Source: Caecitellus pseudoparvulus
Taxonomy: Eukaryota > Protista > Bigyra: Bicosoecida
DNA length: 16,513 nt
Direction of reading: 5' to 3'
Assembly: GCA_965644315.1 (NCBI GenBank)
Contig: CBFFRQ010000083.1
Location: forward strand, 1 to 16,513
Part shown: piece by piece, positions 3,001-16,513 of the stretch
Numbering within the stretch: the first letter of the stretch is position 1
Layout of the letters: each line of letters opens with the position of its first letter
The notes under the pieces: model-generated
Told to the model about the DNA's origin: nothing
Database searches by the model: none
The model's input: only the letters and a program-made list of their open reading frames with translations
Translations under genes and position numbers: made by a program

Positions 3001-6000
3001 GTTCAAGCTGTCTTGTGTGGCATTCGCGACATGGCACGCGCACCAGTGGACCCATCCCTGGTCCCACTGCCTGCGCACGGCGAACCCCCCCCTCCCAGCG
3101 CTGATAAGGCTGACGTTGAGCAGCCTCATGACACGGTACCCGCTGCAGCTGCCGCCCCCATGGAAGATGCCAACGGAGAAGAGCAGAAGTATGAAGAGAC
3201 GGGGCCAGCCAGTGAATATCCTCATGCCCGAGGGCAAGCCCACCGAGGGTGGATTTTGGACGGCTTCCCGCAGACTCTCACTCAGGCAGTGCTGTTGGAA
3301 GAAGCCCTGACCTGGCAAGCTCCTGATCTGGGCCCTGGGCTGCCGGAGCGAGCCCGTGTGGAGGGCCGGGGGACATGGGATGCAAGTGCTGCCCGACAGG
3401 AGGAACCCACTCAAGAAAACGCTTGGGAAGCTGTCATGGTGCTGCCGGTGCCGCCACACCCTGTTCTCGACGCGGACGCAGATGACGACGACGGCCTGCC
3501 CAGCCATCGAGCACCCCGACCCGTCTCTGCCCCAGTTCCCCTGCCCAAGCACCCCCATGGCGTGAAGCTCCTGATCCGCCTCGTGCTGCCCCCTGAACAA
3601 GCCCTGCGTAAGGTGCTTGGGGTGCGTGTGGATCCAGCCCGCTTGGTCACTTTGCAAGCTTCAGATGCCGCTGAAGCAGCTGCTGTGCCAAGGGATGAAA
3701 CAGGGTCGCTGCAAGACGTCTCAGATGGTGACGTGCCGTCCGCTGGCGCTGCCGTGTTTGGCCACGAGGGCGTCGACAGCACTGTCCGAGCTGGAGCCCG
3801 GGGCTTGAACCCACCCGCAGCTCTGCGGGGAGAGGCCATGAACGTGGTCGTCGGTGCTGAGCCGCTCCAATCCGTGACAGAAGCCAAGACTGCGCAGGAA
3901 GAAGAGGAAGAGGAGGTGCGTCCCGCCACACCTCAGCGCCGGGCCGAAGCAGGCGGCCCCTCTTCGAGCACAGCGCCGCGCCAAGGCGTGGTTGGCGCAG
4001 AACACCTCGCCGCACAGGAGCAAGCAACCGCCACATTCACCTCCGGCTTGCCTGGAGCAGTTCCAGCAGTGGACGAGGTGCGCCCAGGCGGAGGTCAGCA
4101 GGAGCCCCAAGTGCACGAAGTATCCCCGGATGCCATGTTGCCCGTACTGCCGGGCGGCTACGTAGTGTCTGCACGGCGAGGCCATGTGGTGTACCACCTG
4201 GACTTGAACCCGCCACCCCACAAGTGCCGCACTGTAGAGGGCCTTGTTCCTCCTTCAAGCATTGACGCTGGCACAGCGCGGCTGCCGAGTACCCTGACAA
4301 GCAGCACACTGCGCCTGCCGCCACCAGTGCTTGCAGAGGCCATGGAACGGTATTTTAACAGTGTTGAAGGCGTGGACGAGTTCTTCTGGGCAGGCAGTCG
4401 GGGTTCAGTGCTGCGCGTCGCTGCCTCGCGCCCGCACTTCGGCACTGGACACGGCAAAGAGGCTGACAGCGACGGTGATCAGGACAGCTCTGAGGAAGGC
4501 AAGAGCGCCAGTGACCTGGTCGGGGTAGAGGAAGGCGCTGGTGTGGTGGCAGATGGGGACGGACGTGTCCTGTGGTGCAGCGATGCATGGGCCGAGTACG
4601 CGCCTGTGGGCGCCTGGGCTGCCAGCGGAAAGGGGGACGTGCTGACGGAGGCAAGCCTCTTCGCAGTGCTGAGTCGCGCAGCCTCGGCTGCCGAGGAAGA
4701 CATTGCCGCGCGTGAGGCAGCTCGTGAGCAGGCGTGGATAGAAACCCTTGAGCACAGGGATGCGGCCTTGGCCGCCGATGCCACAAGCGCTGCCACGGAG
4801 CTCGCCTTCCGCCGCGGGGAAGATGTGCATGTGCAAGTTGTCGATGCATTGGAGGCTCAACAGGCAGAAGCCGCTGCGGCAGCCGCCGCTGCAGCGGCCT
4901 CCAAGAAATCTGGCTCCAAGGGCAAGTCCGAAAGTCCAAAGGCAAGTGTGGCAGAAGGAAAGTCTGTGGATGATGATGGATCCGAGCATGACAGTGCCCA
5001 GGAGGAGGCGTTGACCGCCTCTTCCTTGGCTGCAGAGGAAGCTGAGGTGGTTGCGCCAAGTCTGCACGAACCGTATGTGATTGCCCCCGACCTTCCACCT
5101 GCTCCTTCCTTGGCCCAGGTTCCTCCAGCCTCGCCAACTGCCGAGCCTGCCGTGCATGACACAGCTGAGGACGTGTCCCCCCAACGGGCGGAAGCACAGG
5201 CTGCAGCTCAGGCTGCCCTTGCAACGCGAGCCGCTGCCCAAGCGCTGGTTGTTACTCCAACACGCTTCGCAGGGGCTTTGGAAGACTCTGTGCCCCGAGA
5301 CAAGGCGCTGGGCCTCCTGGCGCAACTCTGGCAGCAGGCAGTGTCACACTGCGGGCAAACGCTCAGCAGCAGCTTCCTCCGAGCTGCCATGGAGCAAGTG
5401 GGTGTGCACGCGCGGTTGGGGGAGACGAGCCGTCTTCTGCACCGCTTCTTGCGGCGCCCCGTCCCTGCCTACCAGGCTCTCATGCGCCATGCACAAGACG
5501 CCATCAACAGCTTGTCTTGGGCTGAGCGCATGGGGCCCTCAGCGGAGGCCTGGTCTCAAGCCCCGTCTGTTGAAGAAGCAGCTTTGCAGGTGTGGGTGGA
5601 GGAGGCTCTGGAAGCCTCGGGTGGCAGCAAAGCTGCCGCCTCAAAGAAGGGTAAGGGTGCCGCTGCGCCCGAAGCACAGGAGCCGTCGCCTGAGGCTGAG
5701 GCTGAGAAAGCAGCCTTGCGTGCGGCTGCGACCCGAGCTCAGTTGGCGGAGACGGTGCAGATTGCCACCAACTGCATGTTGGCCACTGCCGAAGCCCGGC
5801 GGGAGAGCGCCTTGCACCTGCTGCACGCTAAAGGGGACGACGGGTGGGTGCAGTACGTGCAAGGGGCGCTGGCGTCCCACTTCTGCAGCGCAGTGCAGGC
5901 AGAGGGCGACCGCCTTGTCGCCTCCCGCCTGGTGCTGATGGGGTACATGCGGGCGGCAGATGGGGCGGATGGCTGTGGTATCCTGACCGGCCGCAATGCT

Positions 6001-8283: not shown

Positions 8284-8538
8284 GTGTCAGGCAGGATATG
8301 GGCCGCCCTAGACGGGCTTGCACTTTCAAGAGGGGGCGGTGGCGGTGTGGTGTGGTCCGGCAACATTTCCCTGAGCCGCCACGCTACCCTTGCGAAGCAG
8401 AGCACACTCAAGATGCTACAAACCTTTCACCGACCAAATCTGTGCACTTTTCCCTTGCAAGCATGCCCTTTTCTGCCGTTGCCTGCGACTTACCTGCCCT
8501 GTGGCTGGGCTCCCGGTGGCTTTGCGCCGCCTGGTTGT

Positions 8539-8703
8539 GACTAGGCAAATTCCGCACGGCACACTTTGCAAGAGCTGTGCCTGGCGAACGTGCGGTCATT
8601 CCTCTTGACGACACCGCCTAATTGGTTCTTCAACACTCGAAATTAACAGTGAGTGCAGTTCTGTGGTGTGGCGTTGCGTGGCTCATGAATCCTCATGCGT
8701 GCC
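8539..8703 (+). repeat. Diverged upstream flank of the duplicated unit, copy 1 (partner ~13819-13981)
   Basis: Colinear similarity from GACTAG onward, including AACACTCGAA (8632-8641 = 13912-13921) and an identical 23-mer TAACAGTGAGTGCAGTTCTGTGG (8644-8666 = 13923-13945). Confidence 0.85.
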
Positions 8704-8727
8704 ACTGTACCCTTGCGTTGTCTCAAG

Positions 8728-11540
8728 ATGGCGGCTGCGGCTGGCGCTGGTTCGGGTCCCCCCTCGTCCTTTGAGGAACTTTGCGCTGCGGGGCTTCCCC
8801 TTCCAAGCTCACAACTCGATCCCAAGAAAGGCTCTGTGCTTCAACCAAGACGGCGCTCAAGGAGATCTTCCCGAGCATTGGCTGGACAACCGGCGACAAG
8901 ACAAAGGCCACAGCCTACAAGGGGTCAAGTCTCCTGGGTCAACGAAGGATTGACCGAAGAGGACGATGCATGGTTGGCAGACATGGCAGCCGACACCACC
9001 CACCCCTTCGTGCCGATTGATCACCTGCGGCCGGCCTCCGAAACACTGACGCTGATGGAACGGATACTGCACGGTTGGCGTAGAGCGTCACCAGCCTACC
9101 TTCTGACAGGTCCCAGCGGCGTTGGGAAGACCCATCTGCTGGAGGCACATGCCCGGCAGTTGACTGTGAGGAGCGCCAGAGCGAGAGGCGGCCGGCTCAC
9201 ACTGTGTTGCAGCACGAAGCTTGCTTTACACGAGCCTTCAGACACCGAGAGCTTTCATGAGTGGCTGCTCGGGTCAGTCGCGAGCCAGCTGGCCGAGCTG
9301 CAACAACATGAGTCTGTCGCAAAGGTGCTGAGGCTGCTGGCCGGCTCTGCACGTGGGAACCCTGCACGGCAGACGGTAGACGTGCAGCATCTGCTGGCCA
9401 TGGCTGCAAGGGACAGCACCGGCAGCACTCCACCCACAGAGCTGTCGCCCGAGGTGCACACAGCTCTGACTGGTGCTGGCACGAAGAATCGTCTGGGCCT
9501 GGCCTGCGCCGTGTTGAAGGAAGCCAACATCGCCGTCATTGTGCTCATTGATGACGCCGACTGTCTTTTCCAGGGCAAGCACTTCACACGGGGGTGTGCG
9601 AAGCGGTGGTGCGCGCAGCTGCGGCAGATGCTGTCTTTCAAGTACCCTGCAGTTGGCGTGGTCCTGTGCACAGCCTTCCAGCGGGCCGACCAACTGTTCG
9701 AAGACGATGGAGATCATCATGACTTCCCGCCCCGCTTCACACATCACGATCTGCGAAAAGACTGGAACGAGGCCTTGATCGAGCACGTTCCTCTGGGGGG
9801 GCCTGCCTGGAACTGCACGTCTCTCATGGCCTTCCTCCTGACACACGCGGGCAGGAAAGTGGGCAGCTCATTCTCCCTCTTCCAGCGCCACCTTGACCAG
9901 CAGCCGTCAGAGGTAGCGCTTCGGGTGGCCAGGGGCTCGATGAGCTGTGCCTGCGGGGCTGGAAGGGGGGCGCTGGAGCAAGCTCTGCCGAGAAGCTGGA
10001 CGCTTTCCTGGTGCACATCATGGAGCAGTTCGGGCACACACCCAAAGACCTGGAGCGTGCGGTGCCTGAGCTTCTTCGTGCATGCCAAGCGCCTCAGACA
10101 TGGCCAGTATCCAAGGTGACTGCACGCAAAGCTGTCTCACGTGAACATGCCCGTATGTTCAGGCTGGTGATGGATACTTTCATGGAGATCTTGCCGGATG
10201 ACGAGCAGGAACAGCTGGCCAAGGACACCCTGCTCACCTTCCGCTCTGGGCGGTACGCCGTGTCCAGTTCGCTGTTGGAAGAGTTCCTGGACGTATACAT
10301 CACCCGCCAGGCACAACAGGCCGCAGCCGCAGCAGGTGACAGCGCAGCTCACCAGGCACGTGCGCTTGTATGTCCGGCTGCTCTTCATTGCGTCAATACT
10401 GCCATGGATGCTGGGTGGCTCTCACCCCACCCCCCCCGTGGTCTGAGCCTGGGGAGCCTGCAAGTGTACCGCCAGAACATGTGTGGGGGTGTGCACCCTG
10501 ACATCATCAGGTGGATGCGGGGTGGTGGGTTTGGCGAGCAGGCTGAGATGCCCATGGCCCTTGTCTTTGCGAGGATGCCGAGGTTCAAAGGACGTGTGCT
10601 TGTAAAGCGTGCTGACGGGTCAGTATGGTGCGGCAATGATGACGCAGAAGCTGGAGAGCTGGTGGAGCTGTTTGTTAGGCGGCGTAGGAGGAAGGCTGCT
10701 GGCGCGCGCCAGCCCGAGGCCGTGCCTGCTGAGAAAAGCTGTGCAGCACCTGCAGAGGCGGGCGCTGAGGGAGGTGGCGCGGCAGCTGAAGGTGGTGAAA
10801 GCTGGCTTGCCCGTGCGGAGGCTGCGTGTGAGTCGCTCAAGAAGGCTCCTCGTGAACTACAGGAGCTCTTGACTCTCACCCAGGGTGGTTTCTGGGTGAA
10901 GGAATCGCCCGATGAAAATGGAGCCGACCTCTTGGGGGTGCTACCCAGTGTTGGTGCTGACGGGCTGTCTGTCAAGGTCGTGCGAGTTCAGGTAAAGCGA
11001 GCCATTCAGGACACACTGAAGGACCCTCGCCAGCACGAGAGAGCTGGTGCCTGTCTGCGGGAGGCAGTGGCGAAGCTCCTGGGTGTGGAGATCTTCAGTG
11101 ATGGAACGGCAGCTGATCTGGAGAACATTCACCTACCAGTGGTCAGGGCGGTGTGGGACATCATTGCTGTCGCCATCATTGCTGGCAAAGACGGGTGGCA
11201 TGTATTGGACGACAAGCATTTGGTAGAAGTGAAGCTCAAGGAGCTCTTTGAAAGTGGAAAGGTCCGCTTTGAAGATGGTGGGGCGTGCGTTGCCATGACA
11301 CACGTGCCATCTCGAAGAACAAAGCAAAATGCGGAAGAAAAGGGCATCCAGGTCTTTGATGGCAAAGATCTGAAGAAGTACTGGGGGAGGGTGGCGGTCG
11401 TGTGTGCTGCCGCAGGTGTGTGGCTGTGGGATGGTGCGGCCGGCAGGGACACCCCCCAACAACCAGGAGAACCCGAACGCAGTGGGAGTGCCGACGACGG
11501 CCCGTCTCGCCGGCCCAGGGTGCCCGAAAAGGGCAGGTAG
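8728..11540 (+). CDS. STAND-like P-loop NTPase fused to a C-terminal Mrr-like PD-(D/E/Q)xK restriction-endonuclease-fold domain (copy 1); ~937 aa after correcting one frameshift at 9932-9935
   Basis: ORFs 8695-10119 and 10011-11540 join if one G is added to the GGGG at 9932-9935; copy 2 has GGGGG there and reads through. Walker A GPSGVGKT (9109-9132), Walker B VIVLIDDAD (9535-9561), strand GVVLCT, GxP-like FGHTPKDL, winged-helix-like NTAMDAGWLS. Nuclease motifs: GFGEQAE (~10527-10547), DENGADLL (D at 10926-10928), VRVQVK (QxK 10989-10997), and the tail CVAMT...NAEEKGIQVFDGKDL typical of Mrr_cat-type domains. Ends in tandem stops TAG TAG. Start could instead be ATG 8695. Confidence 0.8.
8950..10637 (+). 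repeat. High-identity direct repeat core, copy 1 (partner 14137-15819)
   Basis: Offset is 5187 nt at the start and 5182 at the end. From ~9410 to ~10500 I saw only two homopolymer-length differences. Alternative-frame ORFs in the provided track have identical translations in both copies (e.g. 9539-9778 vs 14726-14965; 10137-10388 vs 15325-15576). Confidence 0.97.
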
Positions 11541-11785
11541 TAGCGTAGCAGTTGGAATGCAAAGCAGCACCGTGTGCCCAGTCTCTCCCGCTGACGCCAT
11601 GCCTGGCTCCCTGCACTCCTCACCCGCTGCACGCCACTCGCCCCTGCTGACCCAGATCTGTCGCGCGACACAGCTGCTGTGGAGATTGGACAGAGCTGAT
11701 CACCTGCTCTGCTGCCGCTTGCAGCATGCTGGGATCCAGTTCAGACCCCACCCGCCCACTGAGTGCGCGACGCAGCTTCATGATG
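11504..11785 (+). repeat. Diverged downstream flank of the duplicated unit, copy 1 (partner ~15869-16155)
   Basis: Shared AGCAGTTGGAATGCAAAGCAGC (11547-11568 = 15912-15933), CTGCACTCCT, CCCAGATCTG, GTGGAGATTGG and CTTGCAGCATGCTGGG in colinear order. Confidence 0.88.
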
Positions 11786-11957: not shown

Positions 11958-13565
11958 TCAGGCCTTGGAGATGGCGGCACGTGCAGCCTTGACGATGGTG
12001 GCGTGGTCCGCTGACAGGAAGGCGCCAGTCTTGGCGGTCTTCCACTTGGTAGCCTCCTCCTTGGTCACGATGCCCTGCTCCAGGAAGTACGCTGTGAAGG
12101 CCCCGATGACTGCTGGGCGAGCGTCGGCGGTGTACATGTCCTCCAGTTGGCAGTAGCGCCCAGTGCCTTCAAGCAGGAACGCCGCGAACTCCTCCGCTCC
12201 AGCGGCACGCCCGGCATCGGCGATGGTCTTCACGGCACCCTGCACCTTGTGCAGCTGCTCGACGTCTGCGGCACCGGCATTGCCGCCCATGCCAGCGTTG
12301 CCAGCATCACCGACCAGCTGCAGGAGAGCACTGGCCGCGGCGGGGGCGCTGGCACCGGACAGGTGTGTGCTCCATGCGGCGGCGATGTCCTCGGCACCCT
12401 TCCGGTCTGACTCTTGGCGCCATGCCAGCAGAGCCTGCAGGTGGGCCGCATCAGGGTGCGAGGCGATGGCGTCGCACTGCAGGGCAGCCGCCATGTTCTT
12501 GGTGAAGCCCCGCGTGTCGAAGGTGCAGGGGCCAGCCAGTGGCATGAGGCTGACGTCGTGCGGGATGGTGACGGGAGGGCCGTCCTCCTTCACCTTGGCG
12601 GCCTCCACCAACATGGTGCCAAGCAGGGCCAAGCCGGAGCCAGCGAAGAATGCGGTGCCAATGCTGCACAGCCGCACCAGGGTGGCCACGTGCATGCTGC
12701 CGTTGTTGATGACGGGGGCGAAGAGCTGCGAGGAGAGGGCAGGGCGGGAGGAGTGAGGCGGGCCGGCACGGGTGCAGGCGGGTGCGGGCGGGGACGTGTA
12801 TGCACGGCAGTTGGTCAGTAGGCCTAGTCGCGGAGTGAAGATCAAGGCGGCAAGCCGCTCAGAATAGAGGTGTCAGAAAGTACGCGAATCGTCATCCCAA
12901 CGCCAGTGCACACACGGACACCGGGCGTGCGCGTCACGTACCACTCCCAAGTACACGTCCACCTTGGGCAAGTCGTACGCCTTGAAGTCCTTGTAGCCGG
13001 CGAGGTGGGTGGCGAGGCCGCTCACCACGTCGTCCTGTGTGATGGCGTCCTTGGCCCAGGCCAGGGACAGCAGCAGGGCAGCGTCCTCTCGGGCTTGGGC
13101 GTCCTTGGCATCCTTGGCCACCTTGAAGGCCTCTGAGATGAGGGCCTCACCCCGACCAGTGGAGGCTTGGATCTCCTGCAGGGAGGTCACGAGCTCCTTC
13201 CCGGCGGGGGTGTCTTCCAGCTCTTGCAGGGATGCCTGTCGGTGTTCGCTGCGCAGGTTGGAGCCGAAGTCCGTGAAGAAGGAGGCCACGCGAAGGACCA
13301 GGGCATCCCCCTCCAGAGCCTCGGACGCTGCACCAGCTGCTGCAGCTGCTGCCGTCGCCTTGGGGGAAGCTGCTTGTGGAGAGCGGCCGACACCACCTGG
13401 GCGCCCTTGGGGGCGACCACTGCGCCGCCCACCAGCTCGAGACGCGTGGCGGGATGTGCCTGTCGCATCAGGGATGTTGTAGCATTGCACACCCTCGGCC
13501 GTGTTCCGGCTGTTTGCGAGCATTCCCGGTTTAGCAATGCTCAGAATGGTCATTATGCAGTTCAT
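11958..13565 (-). CDS. eIF4G C-terminal-half-like protein (MA3 + W2 domains); exons ~13565-12942 and 12725-11958; start uncertain, probably 5'-truncated
   Basis: Minus ORFs 12873-13649 and 11958-12845 join in frame through a phase-0 intron to give ...KDAQAREDAALLLSLAWAKDAITQDDVVSGLATHLAGYKDFKAYDLPKVDVYLGV|LFAPVINNGSM..., an MA3 signature (re..a.Ll..L....it...v..G......D...DlP....yl). The C-terminus AFTAYFLEQGIVTKEEATKW resembles the W2 aromatic/acidic box. Codon usage is strongly GC3-rich over these domains. In-frame ATGs at 13565, 13553 and 13523 lie in compositionally different sequence. Confidence 0.72.
12726..12941 (-). other. Spliceosomal GT-AG intron, 216 nt, phase 0
   Basis: Minus-strand donor GTG|GTACGT at 12941. 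Acceptor CTCAC...CCCTGCCCTCTCCTCGCAG|CTC at 12726, with a pyrimidine tract and a branch-point-like CTCAC. Removal keeps the frame and completes the MA3 motif. Confidence 0.85.
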
Positions 13566-13818
13566 GACCTTGTCTGGGACTGCCAATTTGGGCAGTGAGC
13601 CCGTCAATATCACCGCGGTCCCTGCACCCCTCCCTCCCACCTCAGACAACCCCCCTCAAACAGTTCGCGACACTCTGCGCTCTGCCACAATCCACAAGCC
13701 GCGCACACGTTCCGATCCTATCATGTCAACGCACCTGCACCAACGTCTGTGTTTCCGGTTCTCTTCTGCGTCTGACTCCTCTTGCGGCACACACTACGTG
13801 ATTGCGTCGTGTGTTGAC

Positions 13819-13981
13819 GACTAGCCAATTTCCGCAAGTCTAATCTTGCACGAGCTGTGGATCGCGAGCCAGCCGCCATTTGCCTTTGCAGCACCGCCAA
13901 GTTGGCTCTTGAACACTCGAAGTAACAGTGAGTGCAGTTCTGTGGCGTGGTGTGGTGCCGCTCGTGAGCGCACGTGCCTGC
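13819..13981 (+). repeat. Diverged upstream flank of the duplicated unit, copy 2 (partner ~8539-8703)
   Basis: Same shared blocks as the partner. Confidence 0.85.
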
Positions 13982-14031: not shown

Positions 14032-15696
14032 ATGGAAAAAGCAACGGTTCTCGCACATCCCCTGCGTGGCACACAACAACCTGGTCCCTTTGAGGAGATG
14101 TGTGTTGGTGCGCAGCCCGTAGGCACACATCAAGCATTGACCGAGGATGACAAAGCCTGGTTGGCAGACATGGCAGCCGACACCACCCACCCCTTCGTGC
14201 CGATTGATCACCTGCTGCCGGCCTTCGAAACACTGACGCTGATGGAACGGATACTGCACGGTTGGCGTAGAGCGTCACCAGCCTACCTTCTGACAGGTCC
14301 CAGCGGCGTTGGGAAGACCCATCTGCTGGAGGCACATGCCCGGCAGTTGACTGTGAGGAGCGCCAGAGCGAGAGGCGGCCGGCTCACACTGTGTTGCAGC
14401 ACGAAGCTTGCTTTACACGAGCCTTCAGACACTAGTAGCTTTCATGAGTGGCTGCTCGGGTTAGCCGCGAGCCAGCTGGCCGAGCTGCAACAACATGAGT
14501 CTGTCGCAAAGGTGCTGAGGCTGCTGGCCGGCTCTGCACGTGGGAACACACCAGGCGAGTCGGTAGACGTGCAGCATCTGCTGGCCATGGCTGCAGGGGA
14601 CAGCACCGGCAGCACTCCACCCACAGAGCTGTCGCCCGAGGTGCACACAGCTCTGACTGGTGCTGGCACGAAGAATCGTCTGGGCCTGGCCTGCGCCGTG
14701 TTGAAGGAAGCCAACATCGCCGTCATTGTGCTCATTGATGACGCCGACTGTCTTTTCCAGGGCAAGCACTTCACACGGGGGTGTGCGAAGCGGTGGTGCG
14801 CGCAGCTGCGGCAGATGCTGTCTTTCAAGTACCCTGCAGTTGGCGTGGTCCTGTGCACAGCCTTCCAGCGGGCCGACCAACTGTTCGAAGACGATGGAGA
14901 TCATCATGACTTCCCGCCCCGCTTCACACATCACGATCTGCGAAAAGACTGGAACGAGGCCTTGATCGAGCACGTTCCTCTGGGGGGGCCTGCCTGGAAC
15001 TGCACGTCTCTCATGGCCTTCCTCCTGACACACGCGGGCAGGAAAGTGGGCAGCTCATTCTCCCTCTTCCAGCGCCACCTTGACCAGCAGCCGTCAGAGG
15101 TAGCGCTTCGGGTGGCCAGGGGGCTCGATGAGCTGTGCCTGCGGGGCTGGAAGGGGGGCGCTGGAGCAAGCTCTGCCGAGAAGCTGGACGCTTTCCTGGT
15201 GCACATCATGGAGCAGTTCGGGCACACACCCAAAGACCTGGAGCGTGCGGTGCCTGAGCTTCTTCGTGCATGCCAAGCGCCTCAGACATGGCCAGTATCC
15301 AAGGTGACTGCACGCAAAGCTGTCTCACGTGAACATGCCCGTATGTTCAGGCTGGTGATGGATACTTTCATGGAGATCTTGCCGGATGACGAGCAGGAAC
15401 AGCTGGCCAAGGACACCCTGCTCACCTTCCGCTCTGGGCGGTACGCCGTGTCCAGTTCGCTGTTGGAAGAGTTCCTGGACGTATACATCACCCGCCAGGC
15501 ACAACAGGCCGCAGCCGCAGCAGGTGACAGCGCAGCTCACCAGGCACGTGCGCTTGTATGTCCGGCTGCTCTTCATTGCGTCAATACTGCCATGGATGCT
15601 GGGTGGCTCTCACCCCACCCCCGTGGTCTGAGCCTGGGGAGCCTGCAAGTGTACCGCCAGAACATGTGTGGGGGTGTGCACCCTGACATCAAGTAG
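14032..15696 (+). CDS. STAND-like P-loop NTPase lacking the nuclease domain (copy 2), 554 aa; truncated paralogue or recent pseudogene
   Basis: Near-identical to copy 1 over the NTPase, with intact Walker A GPSGVGKT and Walker B LIDDAD. Ends at TAG 15694-15696 where copy 1 has TGG. Confidence 0.75.
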   Translation: MEKATVLAHPLRGTQQPGPFEEMCVGAQPVGTHQALTEDDKAWLADMAADTTHPFVPIDHLLPAFETLTLMERILHGWRRASPAYLLTGPSGVGKTHLLEAHARQLTVRSARARGGRLTLCCSTKLALHEPSDTSSFHEWLLGLAASQLAELQQHESVAKVLRLLAGSARGNTPGESVDVQHLLAMAAGDSTGSTPPTELSPEVHTALTGAGTKNRLGLACAVLKEANIAVIVLIDDADCLFQGKHFTRGCAKRWCAQLRQMLSFKYPAVGVVLCTAFQRADQLFEDDGDHHDFPPRFTHHDLRKDWNEALIEHVPLGGPAWNCTSLMAFLLTHAGRKVGSSFSLFQRHLDQQPSEVALRVARGLDELCLRGWKGGAGASSAEKLDAFLVHIMEQFGHTPKDLERAVPELLRACQAPQTWPVSKVTARKAVSREHARMFRLVMDTFMEILPDDEQEQLAKDTLLTFRSGRYAVSSSLLEEFLDVYITRQAQQAAAAAGDSAAHQARALVCPAALHCVNTAMDAGWLSPHPRGLSLGSLQVYRQNMCGGVHPDIK

Positions 15697-15819
15697 ATGC
15701 GGGGTGGTGGGTTTGGCAAGCAGTCTGAGATGCCCATGGCGCTTGTCTTTGCGAGGATGCCGAGGTTCAAGGGACGTGTGCTTGTAAAGCGTGCTGACGG
15801 GTCAGTGTGGTGCGACAAT
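14137..15819 (+). repeat. High-identity direct repeat core, copy 2 (partner 8950-10637)
   Basis: Direct sequence comparison, as for copy 1. Confidence 0.97.
15697..15819 (+). pseudogene. Post-stop remnant of the start of the nuclease domain in copy 2
   Basis: Reads MRGGGFGKQSEMPMALVFARMPRFKGRVLVKRADGSVWCDN, homologous to copy 1 10515-10637. Homology then breaks: copy 1 10638-11503 (866 nt, including the GAD and QVK motifs) corresponds to only 49 nt (15820-15868). Confidence 0.85.
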
Positions 15820-15868: not shown

Positions 15869-16155
15869 GTCCCGCCGACCCAAGGTGCATCAACGATACA
15901 GGCAGAAGCGCAGCAGTTGGAATGCAAAGCAGCGCCGTGCACCTGGCCTTGAACGCCGGCACCGTGCTGGCTCTCTGCACTCCTAACTCGCCGCGCGCCT
16001 CTTGCCGCTTCTGCCCCAGATCTGGTACGCAACGTATCTTCCGTGGAGATTGGGCTGGGCTGTTCAGCTGCGCTGGTGCTGCTGCTTCTTGCAGCATGCT
16101 GGGCCCTGCTGAGACCCCGCTGGCCCATTCACTGCACGGCACAGCCTCCATCACC
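15869..16155 (+). repeat. Diverged downstream flank of the duplicated unit, copy 2 (partner ~11504-11785)
   Basis: Same shared blocks as the partner. Confidence 0.88.
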
Positions 16156-16513
16156 TTGCACGCTGCAGAAGATTTCCTGCAGTCAGGAGTGGCAAGTGCA
16201 GTCACGTCGCCCAGTGCTGGAGAAACGCTGACTGGTTCAGTGATCTGAAGAAAAGAATCAGCGTTGACTCCCCCACAAATCCCCGCACAAGATCTGCCAC
16301 GCACCTGTCTCAGCAAACCGTGAACCGACAGTTTTCACCGTCCTCCAAGGACTGTTCTGGCATTTTCAATGCACGCTTGACCACTTCGCCGTCGCTCACA
16401 GTGCTCGGGCGCAGCGTTGGGGCAGGGTCGACTCAAGATCGCGCGAAGCTGTCCCTCAACCAGATCTGCAAAGCAGCTTTCGAGCGCCATGTGAGGAAGC
16501 GGGTGCCACGTAC

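Follow-up and report, generated by a model that had tools for sequence, protein, structure and literature searches.

The contig CBFFRQ010000083.1 of Caecitellus pseudoparvulus (assembly GCA_965644315.1, 30.6 Mb) was analyzed over its entire length of 16,513 bp, and we call this stretch the window, or contig C83 where contigs have to be told apart. Its plus strand carries, at 8728–11540, a gene for an AAA+ nucleoside triphosphatase (NTPase) with a C-terminal domain that resembles Mrr-type restriction endonucleases. Two plus-strand open reading frames (ORFs), 8695–10119 in frame 1 and 10011–11540 in frame 3, cover the locus, and three-frame translation together with alignment to intact paralogs of the same genome identified them as the two halves of one gene. 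The gene opens with a conserved start (MAAAAGAGS) at 8728 and closes with the stop codon at 11538–11540; its full-length product has ~940 aa, and this copy is intronless. Each of the two ORF pieces was searched on its own, and wherever a continuous protein was needed its place was taken by L002, a naturally intact paralog on contig C53. The parts of the protein are predicted to follow one another as an N-terminal motif, an AAA+ module of the archaeal-ATPase/ORC-Cdc6/TnsC kind, a lid and winged helix, a linker, and an Mrr-type PD-(D/E)xK domain with an insert.

The first frame segment (8728–9931) opens with a short, conserved motif (FEELCAAGLPLP), followed by a basic region of low complexity and then by the AAA+ core, as delineated by the ORF, Pfam and paralog alignments. 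Walker A (GPSGVGKT, 9109–9132) is conserved in 24 paralog N-domains, with its three glycines invariant and its lysine kept in at least 90% of them. The Walker B strand (IAVIVLIDDADCLF, 9529–9570) has the form hhhhDD/DE with the core IAVIVLIDDAD (9529–9561), and its D206 (alignment numbering) is nearly invariant in the same 24 paralogs, while a GGPAW motif lies at 9796–9810. In Pfam, the models AAA, AAA_16 and AAA_22 match the window N-domain, the last of them with a score of 29.6 bits (cut-off 27). Among the paralog N-domains, AAA_22 matches 23 of 24 and AAA_16 matches 22 of 24, with ATPase_2, TniB and NACHT found in a minority. A Walker A of the type GxxGxGK[ST], a Walker B of the type hhhhD[DE] and Pfam scores over the cut-off thus place this half of the protein among the AAA+ NTPases.

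The second frame segment begins with the AAA+ lid and a helical region (9933–10640) that ends in a winged helix, whose recognition helix and beta-hairpin wing are encoded at 10407–10472. An AlphaFold2 (AF2) model of residues 74–657 of the intact paralog L002 (L002:427–2178; 87–93% identical to the window copy), built with a 35-sequence alignment, reached a predicted local distance difference test score (pLDDT) of 82.4 and a predicted template modeling score (pTM) of 0.83, and in three dimensions it displays an AAA+ base, a helical lid and a C-terminal winged helix. Foldseek placed ORC2/Cdc6 at the top of the matches to this model (E 3e-6). TnsC and MuB are also among the best structural matches of the NTPase. 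The archaeal ATPases of the Pfam ATPase_2 type (PABY2304, 2qen; SSO1545, 2fna), which share the C-terminal winged helix, align across model residues 12–516 at an identity of only 12–13%. We therefore class the NTPase as a winged-helix AAA+ of the initiator/transposition type. The preliminary description had called it STAND-like, a label that is close and captures the P-loop NTPase and winged helix, although ORC/Cdc6/TnsC match better. For the window copy, neither NACHT nor NB-ARC scored over the cut-off, and STAND structures were not the best match to the L002 model; no C-terminal sensor repeat of the LRR, TPR, WD or HEAT families was matched in Pfam, the protein ending ~26 aa past the nuclease domain; and the PADLOC models, Avs2 included, gave only P-loop-level matches. 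The order of Walker A, Walker B, GxP-like and winged-helix-turn-helix-like motifs first noted in this gene was recovered at the same places, conserved across the 24 paralog N-domains.

A low-complexity linker rich in Ala, Gly and Arg (10641–10787) connects the two halves, and the deletion that characterizes short members of the family begins with it, as judged from alignment columns 860–900 and the deletion breakpoint. It leads into the C-terminal domain (C-domain, 10788–11462), which AF2 models as a restriction-endonuclease-fold domain (PD-(D/E)xK, Mrr-like) with a helical insert of ~80 aa. The model of the window's own 225-aa C-domain, built with an alignment of 38 C-domains from this genome and others, has a pLDDT of 90.5 and a pTM of 0.85. 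In this model, two helices are followed by antiparallel strands at residues 35–38, 48–56 and 59–70, the ~80-residue insert, a strand at 159–170, a helix, and a strand at 187–190, and the predicted core topology alpha-beta-beta-beta-alpha-beta is that of the restriction-endonuclease core. E39 lies after strand 1, D47 starts strand 2 and Q68-x-K70 sits on strand 3 (C-domain numbering), so the candidate residues occupy the positions that the fold requires in the model.

At the sequence level, FWVKESPDENGADLLGV (10890–10940) comprises strand 1 with its Glu (KE) and PDxxGAD running into strand 2, providing the candidate metal-binding E and D. Strand 3 (VRVQVKRAIQ, 10980–11009) carries the candidate QxK catalytic motif and an invariant Arg. 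The candidate Mrr-type tail, paired with Mrr by hhalign, consists of strand 4 (11271–11303, ending in VAMTH) and strand 5 (GIQVFDGKDL; GIQVFDGKDLKKYW, 11343–11384), with a helix between them. Across the 38 C-domains, G45 and R66 are invariant, and E39 is retained in 37, D47 in 31, Q68 in 28 and K70 in 30; the complete E/D/Q/K set is present in 21, the window copy among them. The E...GAD...QxK motifs and putative Mrr-type tail of the preliminary description are present in the window copy at the stated places, and their conservation across the 38 C-domains shows that they are no chance motifs; its expectation that the domain would model as a restriction-endonuclease core agrees with the AF2 model and with weak Foldseek matches.

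Structure searches with the C-domain model placed AF1548, CdiA-CT nucleases, Cdn1, AspBHI, MspJI, FokI, Can2, PspGI and NucS near it. The best Foldseek matches were MspJI, Cdn1, SPARDA and EndoMS, none with E below 1e-3, and in the ESM Atlas four of ten matches were Mrr_cat clusters, with DUF4365 and Card1 nucleases as well, at template modeling scores of ~0.4. Three independent structure searches thus all favored PD-(D/E)xK nucleases, each at weak scores, and the language-model feature neighbors of the C-domain are Mrr_cat, Mrr_cat_2 and NERD. In hhalign, the tail pairs with FITTS...GMVLVDGERL of Mrr (not significant), and after removal of the insert RVQVK also pairs in register with YVQAK of the E. 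coli-type Mrr, at P ~0.012 only and likewise without significance. With the Pfam model of Mrr (PF04471, cut-off 21 bits), relaxing the threshold to E ≤ 10 still gave no match in the window piece or in the 38 C-domains. We consider it highly likely that the C-domain has a restriction-endonuclease fold, and an Mrr-like affinity is plausible from the fold, the motif order and the weak scores. The name Mrr-like draws on these features and not on a significant sequence match to Mrr. The domain shares with the Mrr/MspJI type the predicted alpha-beta-beta-beta-alpha-beta core, and its candidate motifs come in the corresponding order of GxD on strand 2, QxK on strand 3, a TT(S/H) strand and hhDGxxL. 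It differs in the large insert of helices that separates strand 3 from strand 4, in failing the Pfam model, and in its fusion downstream of an AAA+ module rather than to Mrr_N or an SRA-like reader.

The gene had been described as apparently intact throughout, which is true of the motifs, all present and in place, and not of the continuous frame. Intact paralogs are continuous through ...QQPSEVALRVARGLDxLCL..., and the window copy drops out of frame exactly between ARG and LD. The cause is one G too few in the G-run at 9932–9935, which has four residues (G4) in the window and five (G5) in three paralogs, as found by blastn against L002, L005 and L006. The G5 paralogs include the second copy on the same contig (copy 2, described below), which is identical to the gene at 8728–11540 (copy 1) at 151 of 152 positions around the run. 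Apart from this break, the frames are open over 394 and 535 codons. An intron at 9913–9977 was rejected as the source of the frame change, as the paralogs run straight through with one extra G, and programmed frameshifting was rejected as well, as intact paralogs do without it.

The G-run was also compared in assembled contigs of public runs, and those with matching DNA include marine metagenomes. In runs X1 and X3, the single contig over the G-run has the extra G at ~2x the depth of local single-copy sequence, which is what two G5 window copies would produce, and in run X8 a contig at single-copy depth shows G4. A second homopolymer, the C-run at 10429–10436, differs too: the eight C residues of the window add a Pro codon (HPPRG, against HPRG in paralogs), and the contigs of all four public runs are 3 nt shorter at this place. 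The two homopolymer differences point either to an assembly with homopolymer-length errors or to a strain that differs at homopolymers, and the frame break itself may stem from the assembly or the strain, or this copy may have been inactivated very recently. That copy 1 is a dead pseudogene without a function of its own deserves serious consideration, though we hold it to be the less probable outcome. The one-base frameshift between the NTPase and the remainder, the G4 of X8, and a ratio of nonsynonymous to synonymous substitution rates (dN/dS) near 1 in its NTPase part (0.80 to L002 and 0.97 to copy 2) speak for a pseudogene, whereas the long open frames with every motif intact, the doubled depth of the G5 contigs in X1 and X3, the 3-nt difference at the C-run, which suggests homopolymer error or strain variation, and a dN/dS of 0.37 in the nuclease domain speak against it.

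A survey of copy number, proposed in the preliminary description and carried out by six-frame searches of the assembly, identified ~40 family loci. Eleven have intact long ORFs of 885–1029 aa with all three parts. Another ~10 are short forms of 550–610 aa that end after the winged helix, and all of these lose similarity at one point, residues 213–221 of the second ORF; proteins of a more distant group (~650–670 aa) are likewise nuclease-less. On each of the contigs C83, C113 and C119, a long gene is followed by a short one that points the same way. The paralogs diverge fast, with identities of 25–90% and dN/dS between paralogs of 0.37–0.8 (the lowest value being that of the nuclease domain), which indicates that the family is under purifying but relaxed selection. 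ORC/Cdc6 proteins at the top of the Foldseek list might suggest a housekeeping replication or repair factor, that is, an ORC/Cdc6-like loader with a repair nuclease. We regard this as extremely improbable, since ~40 fast-diverging copies with dN/dS of 0.4–0.8 are unlike a core factor, the family is almost absent in other eukaryotes, and candidate catalytic residues are lost in many copies.

The short paralog of the window (copy 2) lies at 14032–15696 on the plus strand and encodes 554 aa with the NTPase and winged helix and without the nuclease; a conserved Trp codon reads TAG at 15694–15696. Comparisons of the window with C53 and of copy 1 with copy 2 revealed a deletion of ~0.9 kb, equivalent to 10642–11533, which takes out the linker and the nuclease, with a breakpoint near 15818/15869. 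The NTPase and middle parts of copy 2 are 95–97% identical to those of copy 1. Over the NTPase (8935–9909 against 14125–15096), the synonymous divergence (dS) between the two copies is 0.03, compared with 0.096 between copy 1 and its C53 counterpart, and the flanks of the two window copies are only 72–75% identical, unlike the NTPase parts. This pattern is consistent with gene conversion between neighboring long and short genes.

Outside this genome, we searched 1.84 billion representative proteins exhaustively with a hidden Markov model of the nuclease domain (17 paralogs), which returned 31 representative clusters only. The distant clusters contain proteins of 850–1014 aa that likewise open with an AAA_22/AAA_16 NTPase. 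Homologues of the same layout lie among ordinary genes in contigs of other intron-poor eukaryotes, and in one such eukaryote a distant homologue is single, between purL, CRAL-TRIO and flagellar genes. A word-index search with an intact paralog found four short forms, all in one marine metagenome, and pattern scans of viral and JGI metagenome contigs, seeded from alignment A2 (the 38-sequence alignment being too diverse), found no relatives. We read the family as lineage-restricted, multi-copy and eukaryotic. Whole-protein feature neighbors include Crinkler-family clusters and bacterial ATPase_2 or Mrr_cat clusters of ~600 aa.

The closest described architecture is that of Crinkler/RHS-type proteins. 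According to PMC5289972, which summarizes Zhang et al. 2016, a module of NTPase, helix-turn-helix (HTH) and restriction endonuclease (REase) is the commonest C-terminal module of these proteins and makes up the majority of Phytophthora Crinkler (CRN) C-termini. The family has the same order of P-loop NTPase, HTH and restriction-endonuclease-fold nuclease, and a Crinkler-family cluster is among its language-model neighbors (score 0.92). It departs from these proteins in lacking both a signal peptide and any CR header (Ubl/LxLFLAK or other), in the ~80-aa helical insert of the nuclease, and in the nuclease-less short paralogs adjoining the long ones. Such similarities would fit an effector of the Crinkler/RHS type delivered against prey, hosts or competitors, which we judge very unlikely on the following evidence. 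Neither PF20147 (Crinkler header) nor PF07999 (RHSP) matched the window pieces or ten distant members. Ten of the 31 clusters were looked up by name and ten were scanned with Pfam; no Crinkler name appeared among the former and no Crinkler domain among the latter, and HMMER linked the nuclease domain to no protein named as Crinkler or RHS. The N-terminus has a conserved motif of ~12 aa followed by low complexity, and its ~90 Ala-rich and basic low-complexity residues show no hydrophobic signal-like start. The header, signal peptide and C-terminal repeats reported missing in the preliminary description are thus indeed missing.

Other systems share parts of this design. McrBC and Avs-type systems are NTPase-nuclease pairs, and TnsC of Tn7 is paired with the TnsA endonuclease. 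TnsC and MuB are structural kin of the family NTPase, but the family has no transposase or transposon ends nearby, and its nuclease is fused and Mrr-like, unlike the separate TnsA. The bacterial proteins of ~600 aa with ATPase_2/AAA_14 or Mrr_cat are prokaryotic, whereas the family is eukaryotic, and this relation is a lead from the embedding search with no alignment behind it. A parallel is found in prokaryotic NTP-dependent conflict systems (Kaur et al. 2020, PMC7159879). These and STAND/Avs proteins follow the same logic of an AAA+/STAND nucleotide switch with a restriction-endonuclease-fold effector in diversifying multi-copy families; the family described here differs from STAND/Avs in the absence of sensor repeats (TPR/LRR/WD), in the C-terminal position of the nuclease, and in an NTPase nearer to ORC/Cdc6/TnsC. 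The suggestion of a possibly uncharacterised family was half right: the family itself appears to be undescribed, CR families having been compared by their published description, but systems of this kind are known from the Crinkler/RHS module, whose layout is given in PMC5289972.

The surroundings of the gene reveal how this copy came to its place. The whole of C83 is ~95% identical to C53:613348–629487, but rotated: window 3–13469 matches C53:616547–629487, window 13653–16513 matches C53:613668–616544, and in C53 coordinates the end of the window directly joins its start. C53 has the short unit on the upstream side of SPEF2 and the long unit on the downstream side. As the match includes SPEF2, the copy came with a 16 kb duplicate, segmental or in tandem, or with a haplotype that has diverged, and not via insertion of a 3 kb element. 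C83 itself could be one unit of a tandem repeat, such a haplotype, or a repeat that was not separated correctly. Comparison of the window with C53 by blastn identified an upstream flank at 8483–8678 (+), with ~72–73% identity to short units (the C53 short unit). The equivalent flank upstream of the window short unit lies at 13798–13948, matching the place upstream of the C53 long copy, and a downstream flank at 11534–11769 (+) has ~74–75% identity to short units (window 15869–16148). The upstream stretch of ~200 bp (8483–8678, 13798–13948) is out of frame with stops in the window, and in paralog L018 and the metagenome protein P0003 it is in frame and lengthens the ORF by 65–120 aa. It could be a 5' untranslated region, a promoter or a lost upstream coding segment.

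No terminal inverted repeats or long direct/terminal repeats were found flanking the 3.3 kb unit, no transposase-like ORF was found in the window, and the window has no Rfam match. Inspected contig ends near family copies carry no telomere repeats, and several contig ends break inside copies, so the position of the family near contig ends reflects assembly breaks. These observations bear on a selfish toxin-antidote or mobile-element-derived module, in which the long form would be a DNA-cutting toxin derived from a transposon AAA+/REase pair (TnsC/TnsA or MuB-like) and the short form its antidote, spreading by its own activity or by rearrangement that it promotes. The ranking of TnsC and MuB among the best structural matches of the NTPase, the many copies with several contigs breaking inside one, the long-then-short tandem pairs on three contigs, and the homogenized NTPase parts of adjacent long and short genes (dS 0.03, against 0.096 to the C53 counterpart) would all fit such a module, as would the transposon origin of CR-type NTPase-REase modules given in passages of PMC5289972 (citing Zhang et al. 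2016). We nevertheless consider it unlikely: the unit lacks such repeats and the window a transposase-like ORF, the 16 kb segmental duplicate with SPEF2 implies duplication rather than transposition, the homologue elsewhere is single among housekeeping genes, and the pattern scan of viral contigs was without relatives.

Regarding the neighboring genes, the SPEF2 gene upstream was confirmed by Pfam (CH_2, SPEF2_D5 and ADK). The minus-strand ORFs at 11958–13649, earlier read as an eIF4G-like gene with MA3 and W2 domains, gave no Pfam match even at E ≤ 5, so that the statement that the gene is embedded among eukaryotic genes is confirmed for SPEF2 and finds no Pfam match for the other neighbor. 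The gap between long and short genes on C113 and C119 is only ~1.2 kb, and thus the gene at 11958–13649 (−) is no constant member of the pair. The SPEF2 ORF is open from base 1 of the contig, its CH-like domain beginning at profile position 9, and an ATG followed by a splice-donor-like GTGAGG lies at the contig end (16480–16513); the first codons of SPEF2 would be located before base 1 or, should the unit be tandem, near base 16,513. About 540 bp of this ORF (4114–4655) are absent from the C53 copy, where the flanks are adjacent, an indel in a low-complexity coding stretch.

Collectively, the observed domains and their order, the residue conservation, the size of the family, its long and short forms and its relaxed purifying selection are best explained, with a probability of about 0.6, by a lineage-restricted family for ATP-gated DNA cleavage in genetic conflict. 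If initiator-clade AAA+ proteins, McrBC and the NTPase+HTH+REase modules of Crinkler/RHS proteins are taken as a guide, ATP binding may lead to oligomerization on DNA through the AAA+ and winged-helix parts, and the oligomer may then license or position the Mrr-like domain for the DNA cut. The protein probably acts inside the cell, because it has neither a secretion signal nor a delivery header. As suggested by the architecture, copy number and evolutionary pattern, the most likely role would be in genetic conflict, namely the restriction of viral or other foreign DNA, and the nuclease-less short paralogs adjoining the long ones may be regulators or decoys.

Several results weigh against ATP-gated cleavage in genetic conflict. 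As assembled, the copy at 8728–11540 has an interrupted frame, and the same short G-run is seen in one public run (X8). At least one of the four candidate catalytic residues is missing in 17 of the 38 C-domains. In hhalign, the family profile was not significant against E. coli Mrr or against a 79-sequence Mrr alignment (P ~0.01–0.02 for the alignment), the C-domain and second ORF match no family in Pfam, PADLOC or NCBIfam, and a sequence search of the PDB with the C-domain profile gave chance-level matches only. Across the whole genome nothing exceeded the PF04471 cut-off, whereas this cut-off was exceeded in 9 of 14 control genomes.

The long and short paralogs of this marine protist may tentatively be viewed as the two genes of an intracellular system, either immune or toxin-antidote, whose compatibility gene conversion would maintain; in this system, an ATP-loaded AAA+/winged-helix oligomer would sense foreign DNA (for example, methylated giant-virus DNA) and free the Mrr-type nuclease, with the short form as inhibitor or decoy; we hold this specific arrangement to be doubtful. 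If true, it would give eukaryotes a cell-autonomous equivalent, without a header, of the AAA+/STAND-nuclease defense of prokaryotes. Knowledge of the kind of system is unchanged, the architecture and likely transposon ancestry having been described in 2016 (Zhang et al., as summarized in PMC5289972). The family itself is effectively unannotated, with 31 clusters in 1.84 billion proteins and a nuclease half outside all library families. Its ~40 genes can be used to ask whether free-living protists employ NTPase-nuclease modules of this Crinkler/RHS kind cell-autonomously, as defense against marine viruses or as selfish toxin-antidote pairs, and the long/short pairs offer a simple experimental handle.

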